This document shows positions 14,439 to 57,295 of a stretch of 64,000 nucleotides of DNA, piece by piece (the stretch's first letter is position 1; each line of letters begins with the position of its first letter). The notes under the pieces were generated by a model that had not been told where the DNA came from, made no database searches, and worked only from the letters and a program-made list of their open reading frames with translations. The stretch spans positions 9,362,001 to 9,426,000 of the forward strand of contig OZ176055.1 of the NCBI GenBank assembly GCA_964247055.1. The letters are read 5' to 3'. The position numbers and the translations under genes were made by a program. This DNA comes from Paragordius varius (lineage: Eukaryota; Animalia; Nematomorpha).

Positions 14439-17400
14439 ATGAAAATATTTAAATTTTTGATTTTTAGCTTATTATTTTTGACAACAAAACAGTATTCATG
14501 GACCCTTTCAAACAATGAAACAAGTATTATTTATTAAAATTAAGATTTTACAAATATAAATTGTCCAACAAGTGTTTATTCAGAACTGTTTAAGACAAAA
14601 TTAATCAAAAATCCGTTTTCTGACAATAATTCTTTGCTTAGGGTTATCAATGGTTCTTGGACATACTCAACTGCAATCGGTTTTTTATTTAATATATATT
14701 AAAGATACTCAAAATTATAGTCAAATTTATTTAATACTCGAAAATGTTGATCTTAAAGCCACTGTTTACATTAACAATGTTGAAACAAATCAATTAAATA
14801 ATGCGTTTCGGGAATATTACATTGACGTTAAAGAAGTTTCCATATATATTTTATAACCTAAAGTACTCACCAAATTTAAACATAAAAGTTGTTTTTGAAA
14901 ATCCTGTTAGTTATGCCAAAAGCCTTAATAAATTGTATGAGAATCCCATTTTACCGACATGTCCCCCCAAAATTCAAAATGGAGAATGTCACATTAATTT
15001 AATTCGAAAACCGCAATGTAGTTTTAGCTGGGATTGGGGGCCTGCTATTCCAGATATTAGCCTTGGGTTTATTTTTACTTTTTTTGCATAAATAGGGTAG
15101 TACTGTGTAGTATAACAACTAGTTTGTTTTATAGTCATGTATGATTTATTTCATTAAAAATTATTTTTTTTGCGTTAAATGGGTATAAATATTTGTTAAA
15201 GAATGGAAAAAACAAGAGCGCTATGGTATTAACAATATCATATTCATCAAAAATTAGAATTACCATAGATCTCTTGATTTTGCATTCTTTACCAAATATT
15301 TATACCCATTTAATGAAAAAAAATAAATTTTTGATAAAATTAAGGCATGACTGTAATAAAATAAATTATTTTTTAAAAATCATGAGAAAATTTTTATCAA
15401 TTGGAATTATTTTTAATCTTAAGCATACATTTATATTAACGTATGGGATAAAATCAAGTTTGGCCACAATTAAATAAAATGTTGTAAAAATATAGCAAAA
15501 AAATTTATTTATTTGCAACTAATTTGCTATTTTTATTCATATTCGCAAGGAACGCAAATGTTGTTCATTTTGAGAGAATTTTCCTACGTTATATCAATGT
15601 GTTTACTGCACGCAATAAAAAAGGTATATTTTTGCTCAATAATTTGCACCTGTATAAATAAATATATTTTTTTTATTCGTCACAAAAATATCTAACAAAT
15701 TATACGTAAATTTGTAAAATTTAATAAGAATTTATCCAATAAAGTTATAATGATTTAGTTAAATATGAAAAATTAAACAATCATTGCGGCGAAATATTAT
15801 TTTATCATACTTTTTGATTATAAAAGTATATTTTTTATGTATTATGAATGTTAAAATTTTAATTATTAGGCTTAAACCTTAAACTAGTATGATACTAATA
15901 CCCTTTTTAGCAAAAAAACCCAAATTTTATATAACTTACTTTTGAAAGTAATTTATTGTTTTGGGTTAAAATATCAAGAATAAAGATATACATTCGTAAC
16001 ATTCAATTTTATAAATCTCAGTCGCAATCATAAAAGTTATAAACTATAAATTTAGGCCTAAATATGTTTTTTTTACATTATAAAATTAATCTTTAGATTA
16101 GTTAACTATTAAATTTTCGATTTCTTTCGCTTTTTAGACAACAATACATGGGATGTAACATTTAAAGTCATATTTTTTGCCCCAAATTCATCGGAACCAT
16201 CTGAACAACCAATTGAAATTGGAATAGAATGGCTCAATGATACTATTGATAAATCATTTTCCAAAAATTATAGTTGCGTTTTATCTCAAGATTTGTTGGA
16301 TAATTATGTAGCCTGTATAATAACCTTGGAGAATATAAAAGTTTATTTTACATTTTTTTATATGTAATTTATTTTTTTCCCCAACAATTAATATAAAAAC
16401 CGAAAAAATTTAAAAGAAAAAAATCCACAACACAAAAGCCGTCAAATATATAAGAATTGTTCTAAATTTTTAATTTTGTGGGTTATTGATTTTTAATATT
16501 TGCGCATTTTATTATTTAAATTTGAAAAATAAGTAAAAATTAGTGTCAATAATGCAATCATATGATTTTTTGTTCATTAAATTAAAAATAATTGTATTTT
16601 AGCAAAAAACAATTCAGGATATAAATTTTATATATTTTAAATTAATGTCTATAGTAGTATCCAAATGTAACATATATAAAATAATTTTTGTATATTAACA
16701 GGTGTTAAATTAATTTATTTATTTTTAAAGTGAGAAAAAACACTTGAAATGTATCTTTCCATAAAAAAATTATATATATATATTATATATATCATTTACA
16801 ATTCAAATTCACCCTCAATTAAAATTTATGTTTTTTAATATTAAAAATTGCCTCTATATTTATATATTTTTAAATATATAAATTTTGATTCAAATTAAAA
16901 TAAAAATGAACTATGGCATAAAGATATATTTCTCATTAATAATGAGATATATTAGTTCGAAAACACTCAATTTATTTTTAGGGTGAATTTGAATTGTTCA
17001 AGGATGAATTTGAACTGTAAATGGTATGTAAAATCGATAAATGAATCTATTTTTCAGAATGTAAAACTTTGGTGGCCTAATGGTTTTGGAAATCAAACAT
17101 TGTATGACATTGTAATTAAACATCATGAGAATTATATAACTCCACCACAAAGCATGAAAAAACGGATAGGTTTTCGAACTGTGCAATTAATACAAGACCC
17201 TTTACACAATGATAAAGGTTAATAAGTAAAATACAGTAAAATATGGAATTATACGGACAAAACGTGAAAATATTACGACAAATATTTTTTTGCAAAAAGA
17301 TAGCCATACTTTTATAATTTTGATTTTTTTATATATAACTCATTGTTTTAAAACTACAAAGTATAATATAAAAATGTTAATTGGTAGCACAATCAATTAT

Positions 17401-54900: not shown

Positions 54901-57295
54901 ATCTTTTTCCATAGTAAATATTAAAATTATAAAGGTGAAATATAAAAAATTAAAGACAAATATATATATATATATATATATATATATATATATATATATA
55001 TATATATATATATATATGGTTTCAAAGAAAGGTTGAACCTTATTTTTTTATTATAATCCCAAAGTTATAAAAACCATTTTACTGCTCTACCAATTAACAT
55101 TTGTATTAGCTTACATTTGAATAAATCAGATTTAAAAAGTTTACTGGTTATCCTTATTATAAAATAAAATTACAATCATAATTTTTACCAAAATTAATGC
55201 GCTATTATCATCAATGGATCCCACAGTCTGTAATTCTTTCAAACGTTCAATCATCTAGAAAAGTTATAATGAATTATGGTTAAAACATATATATATAAAT
55301 TGATTAAATATAAAACATAGGACCAATTTATTTTTCATTTAAAATTATTAATCTCTCATCATAAATATTAAAAAATTTAAAATCTTAACACCATTCAAGA
55401 AAGGATTATTTTAGAAGAAACAAAACAAAAGTACCCCTTTAAATAAGCACTTATGATTTCAAACCAAAAATAAAAATATATCATTTTTGGCTCTCTAAAT
55501 ACAAACAGAAGTTAAAACTAATTTTGTTCCAGTAAAAAAAATGTCAAAAATATAATTTACCATAGGAATAGTAAGGGTAATATTTCCATCATCATTTCCA
55601 GACTCAGAATTAACAAGCATACGTTTAAGACCGGCTTTAAACATTTTTTTGCCTTCATCATTCAACTGATTTCGATGCAAAGTTAGCAAAGATTCAAGAC
55701 CTGAACCGACAAAATGTTCTTCCAACACACCCATATTACGTTTATTTAACGGGAGTAAATTCTAGGTAATATCAAAATTTCTAGAGTAAAATATTAATTT
55801 CAAACCAATTTCTAGGAATACTAGTAAATGGCTTATAAAAATGATTGTAAGTATAGTTTCTATAAATTTTATATATATATTAAAAAACAAGACATTATCT
55901 TATTATATAATTTTTGAAACTTAACAGTAGGTCTTAAATTTTATTGATAACATGTTAAAATAAAGCAATATTCCTATTAAACAAAGTAAGTACTCAGATA
56001 TTCATAAGAATAATACATCTCTAAAACACTCTTAAAGCAGAAAAATCCCTAACATAAAAAAATTATTGAAAACTGTTAATGTATATACCATTAACTTATC
56101 ATCCAAATTATTTTTCTTCAGAGCATTCGTAACAGATGATGTTGACTTTTCTTGACTAATCCAAGATTTAAACAAGATTTTAGCGAAATCCATCGATAAG
56201 CCTATAATGGTAAAAAAATTTTTTATAAATAATTGTTTTATTTGGGTTTAAATAAATTTAGCTGTTAATTTAACACAATTATATGGATTACTAATTAAAA
56301 TTTTATTACATCAGTTTTAAAAAATAAGAAAAAGCAACTGATTTATTTATTTATCTAATCAATATTGTTTTCGACAAATAACATTGTCGTTTGGCAAGTA
56401 TTATGATAAGTAATTATTAATAATTTAAATAAACGGACACATTATTTTTATAGAGTTGAATTAGAATCAATCAAGGTTATTTTGATTGGTAAAAATTGAA
56501 AGCTTATTTTGACATTACTTAAGAGGGCTATAGTTGTGACAAAAACAAATTTTAAAATTCTTAGGGATATGAACCGAAAGAGTTTATGAAAAATGAAACC
56601 CAAAAAAACTGTTGTGATGTAAAAGTACTAAATAAAATTATTACCATCTTTGATCAAATGATCCTGAAACAAAGTTTCAATAATTTTCGAATTGATGACA
56701 TTGTTTTTGATCAAAATACCCAGGAATGTTGCCAACTTTTCTCTTTGAAATTCATCAAAACCTTTCAGAAAAAGTAGAACCTTTTTTGTATGGTGTTAGA
56801 TTTAAAAGATTACTTTTTTCATATCATCTTCCAAAACTTTTTCCAAATATTTATATCTGCGAATAAGCTTAACAAAAAGCTAGATATTTTAACAACCATA
56901 TATACCTGACAGAGTGCCAAATAATTTTCAACATTCATTGAGTACTCAAAAACGGAAAATTTATTAACTCCGGTTTCGGGGTCAATTACAAGCGATCCAC
57001 CAGGGGCTAATGTTAAAAAAATTTGCTTAAACCTAAAATAGCACCAGTAATTAGTATGTCAAAAAGTGTTTCTCCATATCTGTGATAATCTAACTTTGAG
57101 CCTGCACCATCTAAATATTTGAAGGCCATATCCAAATCTTGTGCATGGTTGAGAGACCCAACAACAATGTCGCGAAATACATTTGGTTCATATTTTTCTT
57201 TTTCGTCTAAATTTATATTCATAAAAACGTTCGATACCTCTTTTTCTTGTTTTGATTCTTTGTCCTGATAGCGATGGTTTGGGTAATTTACTCAT
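51948..57295 (-). CDS. BZW: eIF5-mimic protein (BZW/5MP, W2 domain), 455 aa, 12 exons
   Basis: Exons 57238-57295, 57033-57206, 56906-57006, 56814-56879, 56645-56780, 56089-56201, 55561-55761, 55189-55254, 54609-54758, 53771-53843, 53003-53125, 51948-52054 sum to 1368 nt. Motifs KPSLSGQRIKTRKRDEKE, KLDYHRYGETLFDIL, KLIRRYKYLEK, VEWNKKE, IQEYCYDN, KGKTIFLEQ...WL..AEEES. Confidence 0.95.
52084..52490. mobile_element. MITE family A copy (left TIR replaced by a TA run, left array expanded)
   Basis: About 8 subterminal units follow (TA)n; the right end is GTGTAAATGGA. Confidence 0.75.
52788..52956. mobile_element. MITE family E (~170 bp, long TIRs ATAGTTGCTTATTTCACAC...)
   Basis: Imperfect arms of about 65 bp: GTTGCTTATTTCACAC...CAGTAGTG...GGAAAAAA mirrored by TTTTTTCC..CACTACTG...GTGTGAAATAAGCAAC. 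Confidence 0.7.
53169..53728. mobile_element. Adjacent MITE family A (53169-53482) and family F (53507-53728) copies filling a BZW intron
   Basis: The two elements, separated by a TA run, occupy most of intron 53126-53770. Confidence 0.85.
54230..54562. mobile_element. MITE family A copy
   Basis: TA|TACCATTTACG...GTAAATGGTA|TA; BZW intron. Confidence 0.9.
54961..55017. repeat. (TA)n microsatellite
   Basis: Uninterrupted TA run of about 57 nt. Similar runs at 20578-20630, 41094-41123 and 47237-47268. Confidence 0.95.

Follow-up and report, generated by a model that had tools for sequence, protein, structure and literature searches.

Tiny introns at gene starts and long introns downstream in a 64-kb window of the hairworm Paragordius varius

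The first introns of genes are reportedly the longest, as Bradnam and Korf are said to have described in 2008. Why, then, do seven genes in one stretch of hairworm DNA open with introns of 21–33 nucleotides (nt) and turn abruptly to introns of several hundred? We examined this question in a single 64-kb window of Paragordius varius DNA (contig OZ176055.1; the window is the whole stretch analysed), which holds the seven genes on both strands: MANBA, TADA2B, FAM98, SF3B2, PSMC1, MRPL41 and BZW. Their introns fall into two size classes that stand in a strict order within each gene, and introns of both classes occupy ancestral positions. The reading that we favour, at a little less than an even chance, is a 5′-clustered microintron architecture with a position-dependent size limit or optimum, made by 5′-specific shrinkage. 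As an architecture it is of a known kind, here more extreme and in a new phylum.

Twenty-two introns measure 21–33 nt (median 26.5), 38 measure 240–1107 nt (median 535) and two, of 75 and 80 nt, lie between, which at the scale of this window is a discrete tiny class beside a long class, as in the microintron architecture of trematodes. Tiny introns occupy the first ranks in all seven genes and follow one another at consecutive ranks, interrupted only by the 75-nt intron of SF3B2 (24, 25, 75, 32), the sole irregularity. The per-gene rank-sum probabilities (1/560, 1/6, 1/10, 2/286, 1/84, 1/2 and 1/330) multiply to 3.8e-12, none of 200,000 within-gene shuffles attained the observed value, and intron length correlates with distance from the ATG (Spearman rho 0.79). 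With distances measured from the ATG, not from the transcription start, the last tiny intron of each gene ends 154–652 nt past the start codon and the first long intron begins 264–848 nt past it. We inspected every one of the ten genes in the window and found none that contradicts the order. The earlier note on this DNA had listed intron lengths for the seven genes, which our rebuilt models reproduce number for number; it had also described the polarity as abrupt and present on both strands, which the rank-sum product places beyond chance, and had set the limit of the frame-required tiny introns at about 650 nt from the ATG, in agreement with the measured maximum of 652 nt. Internal exons have a median length of 96 nt between two tiny introns versus 167 nt between two long ones. 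Exons of the tiny-intron zone contain 69% A+T, compared with 63% in distal exons.

The window has a G+C content of 22–35%, in a genome of about 75% A+T, and its genes are ordinary animal housekeeping genes; the published genome of Gordionus is of the same type (26.9% G+C and 64% repeats, mostly DNA transposons). For the gene models, stop-free segments of both strands were enumerated, gene 5′ ends were inspected by eye and exon-bearing segments were picked by hand; dynamic programming over these open reading frame (ORF) segments then chose GT..AG borders that hold the frame through every segment. An unconstrained version for ab initio gene finding was dropped as too noisy, because the repeat units of miniature inverted-repeat transposable elements (MITEs) score as coding. 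Over-long exon ends were trimmed by homology (BZW and SF3B2, three each; MANBA, one). Each of the seven final coding sequence (CDS) models has a length divisible by three and one terminal stop, and long-intron borders are accurate to about ±30 nt wherever no homologue pins them. Rfam and tRNA scans of the window gave no matches, and protein homology searches with MANBA exon 4, PSMC1 exon 6 and the MRPL41 ORF found no hairworm relative: the MANBA and MRPL41 queries yielded no candidates, and the matches to PSMC1 exon 6 were too uniform to single out a relative.

Could the tiny introns themselves be illusory? The order might in principle reflect chance, selective reporting or faulty gene models, with assembly errors posing as tiny introns or tiny introns overlooked downstream, and such an explanation is open to the objector in so far as the junctions are predicted from DNA alone and two candidate segments, of 27 nt in MRPL41 and 33 nt in MCM6, are in frame. 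We regard it as very improbable. All 22 tiny introns have GT..AG borders, and 21 of them are required by the frame, their retention causing a frameshift or an in-frame stop; the order probability and the concordance of the ten genes stand against chance and selection. Pfam, Protein Data Bank (PDB) and full-length homologues continue across the junctions, and 12 tiny introns lie at ungapped homology (two in MANBA, three in TADA2B, one in PSMC1 and four in BZW, together with frame-linked neighbours). The spliced BZW protein is ungapped over all four of its tiny junctions when compared with the full-length BZW sequences P0154, P0191, P0190, P0200 and P0263 from an exhaustive search, of which P0154 derives from transcript contigs; a search of representative sequences returned full-length BZW homologues and no close relative. 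At 437 residues the PSMC1 model is close in length to human Rpt2 (440 residues), and the BZW alignments show no extra insertions, which makes hidden in-frame introns in the distal exons unlikely.

Four sequencing runs were also compared with positions 46200–52199. Run X3 gives about threefold coverage with DNA of a close relative or of a different population, and it shows one inserted nucleotide at 49695, within the 27-nt intron of PSMC1, a change that only noncoding sequence would tolerate. Runs X4–X6, presumed to be RNA and bearing the same species label, contain next to nothing of this region. The 27-nt segment of MRPL41 is in frame and has no stop, and protein homology and PDB searches found no homologue for it; it is an unproven, candidate intron only. 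The N-terminal introns of SF3B2 and introns 1–3 of FAM98 are predicted from frame and splice sites.

The individual genes show how regular the arrangement is. On the plus strand, the introns of MANBA measure, 5′ to 3′, 21, 25 and 28 nt and then 483, 514, 717, 704, 490, 307, 240, 1107, 391, 669, 876, 667 and 479 nt. Its 5′ zone (14439–14863) contains the tiny introns 14524–14544, 14680–14704 and 14836–14863 (21, 25 and 28 nt), all frame-required, and exons 2, 3 and 4 match positions 13–55, 64–104 and 112–162 of Pfam Glyco_hydro_2_N2 in order. The distal part (14864–24937), with 13 introns of 240–1107 nt, completes a frame-consistent 17-exon model in which introns 6, 11 and 15 contain MITE copies. 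TADA2B, also on the plus strand, begins with introns of 22, 26, 28, 31 and 28 nt (26431–26452, 26513–26538, 26628–26655, 26751–26781 and 26959–26986, in the zone 26335–26986), each of which shifts the frame; those of 22, 28 and 28 nt split the Pfam matches ZZ_ADA2 (1–27/29–46), Myb (3–22/26–45) and TADA2A-like_3rd (1–36/39–73). A single intron of 400 nt (27183–27582) follows in the distal part (26987–27655), where the 3′ end of the gene is uncertain and the last exon has no Pfam match. The TADA2B model (26335–27655, plus strand) stops after 261 codons, without the C-terminal SWIRM-like part: either the model lacks exons farther downstream or this species has a shortened gene.

FAM98, on the plus strand, carries frame-required introns of 25, 26 and 27 nt (31036–31060, 31114–31139 and 31242–31268) in its 5′ zone (30774–31268), followed in the distal part (31269–33289) by one intron of 779 nt and one of 555 nt. 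The match to Pfam DUF2465 spans the 779-nt intron, with exon 4 at 155–212 and exon 5 at 219–276, and intron 4 contains two MITE copies. Within FAM98 intron 5, positions 32645–32930 are richer in G+C and open in frames on both strands, with no tRNA and no Rfam family there. In SF3B2, again on the plus strand, introns of 24, 25, 75 and 32 nt precede introns of 371, 686, 1006, 80, 665, 743, 612, 1088 and 856 nt. The first four (37660–37683, 37776–37800, 37880–37954 and 38014–38045), all frame-required, lie in the 5′ zone (37621–38045), whose weakly conserved N-terminal product gave no homology match in Pfam or in a PDB search of exon 3; the distal part (38046–45641) holds the nine introns of 80–1088 nt, and its DUF382 match begins in exon 6. 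Two tandem structures were seen in the distal introns of SF3B2: an array of five copies of a 30–31-nt unit (92% matches) at 44167–44318 in intron 12, and, at the opening of intron 13 (44570–44995, plus strand), about two extra tandem copies (148-nt unit) of the last part of exon 13, which still translate as ...VLAGPIYDI[S/C]AVV.

On the minus strand, PSMC1 has introns of 25, 28 and 27 nt and then of 416, 436, 507, 703, 314 and 425 nt. The tiny ones, all frame-required, occupy 49891–49915 (right after the ATG), 49818–49845 and 49694–49720 in the 5′ zone 49694–49918, and exons 3, 4 and 5 align with residues 21–50, 54–93 and 94–155 of human Rpt2; the six long introns fill the distal part (45724–49693). 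MRPL41 (49961–50795, plus strand) comprises the candidate 27-nt intron at 50088–50114 and a 382-nt intron at 50225–50606. BZW, on the minus strand, opens with introns of 31, 26, 26 and 33 nt (57207–57237, 57007–57032, 56880–56905 and 56781–56813, in the zone 56781–57295), ahead of seven introns of 443, 327, 306, 430, 765, 645 and 948 nt in a distal part (51948–56780) whose model was corrected from protein alignments and in which introns 9–11 contain MITEs. Despite the long distal introns, the genes are tightly spaced: the stop codons of SF3B2 and PSMC1 lie 82 nt apart, the start codons of PSMC1 and MRPL41 stand head to head 42 nt apart, 60 nt separate the MRPL41 stop from the SRR1 start, and the ends of SRR1 and BZW are about 230 nt apart.

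Three further genes complete the ten. The SRR1-like gene (50856–51716, plus strand), held out from the analysis of order, is an intronless CDS of 286 codons matching Pfam SRR1 over 6–172 of 172 (E 1e-28). The second held-out gene, an SLC52 riboflavin transporter (60730–63567, minus strand; Pfam SLC52_ribofla_tr matches in order over four pieces), begins with an exon of about 790 nt, and its introns, of about 100, 360–420, 219 and 295 nt, include no tiny one. Its first intron, some 790 nt into the gene, is about 100 nt long, which favours a rule of distance over a rule of rank; in this single case a start-proximal zone of a few hundred nucleotides, as the earlier note had proposed, fits better than intron rank. 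The part of MCM6 within the window has long introns apart from a 33-nt GT..AG segment (4519–4551, plus strand) that is in frame, near the 3′ end of the gene and in a variable linker, and that resembles the tiny class (T-rich, ending in tttttag).

How old are the two classes? Of the representative BZW fragments of other organisms, 132 in number, 99 cease to be homologous precisely at the two borders of exon 2, as is expected of exon-sized ORFs from genomes with introns at those positions. Many PSMC1 fragments of other animals run from VHAVVG to GPPGTG, which are the limits of exon 6 in this window, an exon that lies between introns 5 and 6 (436 and 507 nt). Tiny introns 1 and 2 of BZW and long introns 5 and 6 of PSMC1 therefore sit at shared borders, and both size classes include ancestral introns. 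An origin of the long introns as introners was rejected: MITE ends lie 25–67 nt inside the introns, so that the splice sites are not supplied by the MITEs, and the same two PSMC1 introns, at borders common to many animals, contradict it as well. The splice signals of both classes are approximately GT[A/T]...[T/A]AG; the tiny class is poorer in G at exon positions −1 and +1 and richer in T at intron position +4.

If both classes are old, have the distal introns grown or the proximal ones shrunk? Repeats were called by strict self-comparison within the window, which flagged none of 9,537 exon bases; a looser self-BLAST was dropped because it flagged exons as repeats. Repeats make up 24% of long-intron bases, 23% of intergenic bases and none of the 591 tiny-intron bases. 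The commonest element is a MITE of 240–540 nt with the termini ATACCATTTACA...TGTAAATGGTAT (21 terminus matches versus 1.6 expected), TA-rich flanks and subterminal arrays of a 21-nt unit. Nine copies are intact (47267–47571, 7829–8226, 16789–17027, 19584–19856, 20039–20580, 23317–23557, 31903–32206, 40812–41078 and 54229–54563), eight of them in long introns and one in a long interspersed nuclear element. A non-long-terminal-repeat retrotransposon lies at 5598–9073 (plus strand), downstream of the last placed MCM6 exon. It has two ORFs, one of 782 codons that is endonuclease/reverse-transcriptase-like and another of 287 codons, and the MITE copy 7829–8226 sits between the two.

On a rival reading, all introns of this lineage were once tiny and insertions of MITEs and other transposable elements swelled the distal ones, while promoter chromatin or selection on regulatory DNA shielded the 5′ zone. 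Recognisable repeats do occur in 14 of the 38 long introns, among them the eight intact MITEs, and in none of the 5′ zones; the depth of X3 contigs hints at further, moderately repeated sequence in PSMC1 introns 4, 5, 6 and 8. In seven long introns one MITE end lies just 25–47 nt from a splice site, a proximity whose combined probability under uniform placement, calculated by hand, is marginal (P ~0.07). Yet the other 24 long introns contain no recognisable repeat within the window, and the absence of MITEs from the 5′ zone, true as observed, is a circular argument, since a tiny intron cannot hold a MITE; under a loose criterion, moreover, a repeat extends to the start codon of TADA2B. Outside repeats the introns add up to 17.2 kb, and the 16 recognisable repeat blocks correspond to about 0.93 per kb of that sequence, or 0.024 hits per 26-nt target. 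Even a tenfold higher rate would have left most distal introns tiny, and none of the 38 is; by this rough estimate the probability that all 38 were hit is about 4e-26. The estimate argues, roughly and from one window, for distal introns that never were tiny and for shrinkage of those at the 5′ end, and we consider growth by insertion behind a shielded zone unlikely. The earlier description of the long introns as filled with transposable elements accordingly applies to 14 of them in this window, and the targeting of MITEs, which had been offered as a cause, is not supported as a sufficient one.

Shrinkage could have a purely mutational basis, in which a deletion-prone zone just past promoters, for example through transcription-associated breaks, reduces noncoding DNA with no selection on splicing. 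The noncoding DNA at gene starts and ends is indeed very compact, with the spacings of 42, 60 and 82 nt given above, but other promoters of the window have repeat-rich upstream DNA within 100–300 nt, so the compaction is not general, and the tiny class is narrow (21–33 nt), as a floor set by the splicing machinery predicts. We think a mutational zone somewhat less probable again than growth by insertion. Selection might instead act against long AT-rich introns near the transcription start, where cryptic polyadenylation signals would cause early termination. On the sense strand of the long introns, AATAAA/ATTAAA hexamers occur about 6.8 times per kb in this A+T-rich genome, which speaks for such selection, but the hexamers are not depleted in the 5′ zone: they reach 4.9 per kb in zone exons versus 2.1 in distal exons, and 8.5 in the tiny introns themselves. 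Avoidance of polyadenylation signals is thus unsupported, and we regard it as improbable.

The polarity would seem to need either 5′-specific shrinkage or a position-dependent size limit. Under the reading that we favour, the tiny introns would be ordinary GT-AG spliceosomal introns at ancestral positions that collapsed to 21–33 nt within roughly the first 150–650 nt past the start codon. Close to the cap or promoter, introns would be recognised by intron definition and so be free to shrink to the minimum length of the spliceosome; distal introns, recognised otherwise, would remain long and passively gather MITEs, which would leave later introns of 240–1107 nt, rarely 75–100 nt, with a repeat density equal to that of intergenic DNA. 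Position-dependent recognition ranks highest, above a deletion-prone promoter-proximal zone and above stronger purging near the start, because the tiny class is narrow, which points to a mechanical floor, because the range of 35–240 nt is almost empty, and because the same architecture occurs in flukes.

Several observations weigh against this interpretation. Tiny and long introns differ little in their donor and acceptor signals, which give no direct sign of two modes of recognition. The switch point differs among genes, with tiny donors as far as 624 nt and long donors from 264 nt, and the overlap of these ranges means that no single distance from the ATG divides the classes. In MCM6, the 33-nt candidate towards the 3′ end may break the rule of 5′ clustering, and the insertion-rate estimate counts only repeats recognisable inside the 64 kb. 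The sample is seven genes in one window, and in it the tiny introns are junctions predicted from genomic sequence.

How new is such an arrangement? The earlier note knew of no description of it, but microintrons clustered near the transcription start have been published for flukes and, in a milder form, for Gyrodactylus. In Opisthorchis felineus they are adjacent to one another and near the transcription start, and intron definition was proposed to be favoured there over exon definition (Ershov et al. 2019, PMC6530080); for Schistosoma mansoni, a passage of Protasio et al. 2012 (PMC3254664), which refers to the genome paper of 2009, likewise places microintrons near the transcription start. 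The flukes and this window share a discrete micro class beside long introns, with adjacent microintrons near the start, and flukes and hairworms alike are parasites with genomes rich in transposable elements. The fluke class, defined as below 75 nt, peaks at about 37 nt (and 90 nt), whereas the class described here spans 21–33 nt; in flukes the pattern is a preference, whereas here the order is absolute within each gene of the window. Flukes belong to the Platyhelminthes and hairworms to the Ecdysozoa, and the origin was presumably independent. In Gyrodactylus salaris a mode of about 32 bp dominates intron positions 1 and 2 and another mode prevails from position 3 on (Hahn et al. 2014, PMC4040987), but its modes, 32 and 58 bp, are both short, where those of the window are short and long, and its mean intron length drops with ordinal position, the opposite of what we find.

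Among animals, myxobolid myxozoans and Dicyema japonicum are so far the only ones with published introns below 30 nt (Hadjez et al. 2026, PMC13644364), from an analysis of 51 genomes that included no nematomorph. As in this window, introns below 30 nt stand there at conserved positions, the splice signals are reduced to about GTa...AG and short introns have short neighbours; in those animals, however, ultra-short introns are the genome-wide median and no polarity from start to end is reported. The published hairworm genome reports that we found nowhere mention introns. A passage in a preprint (bioRxiv 10.1101/024463) presents first introns as the longest as a general eukaryotic rule; under that rule, as in the window, length depends on position in the gene, with the sign reversed here.

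Were the arrangement to hold throughout the genome, hairworms would join the parasitic flatworms as a second animal lineage, of independent origin, in which microintrons are confined to gene starts, and would be the most extreme case, with introns below 30 nt and of kilobase length in one gene. In such genomes, standard gene finders and RNA-seq aligners with a minimum intron length of 30–50 nt would disrupt most gene models at their 5′ ends. We also entertain, as a tentative and rather doubtful proposition, that an ecdysozoan has independently evolved two position-dependent splicing regimes, one for introns of 21–33 nt within a few hundred nucleotides of the cap and one requiring introns above about 200 nt farther along. 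If this were true, the first regime would remove introns smaller than most animal spliceosomes are believed able to handle, and a single transcript would carry both extremes, making the switch between intron and exon definition directly testable. Such convergence with the flatworms would argue for a general mechanism that ties distance from the cap or promoter to the recognition of introns or to the evolution of their size.

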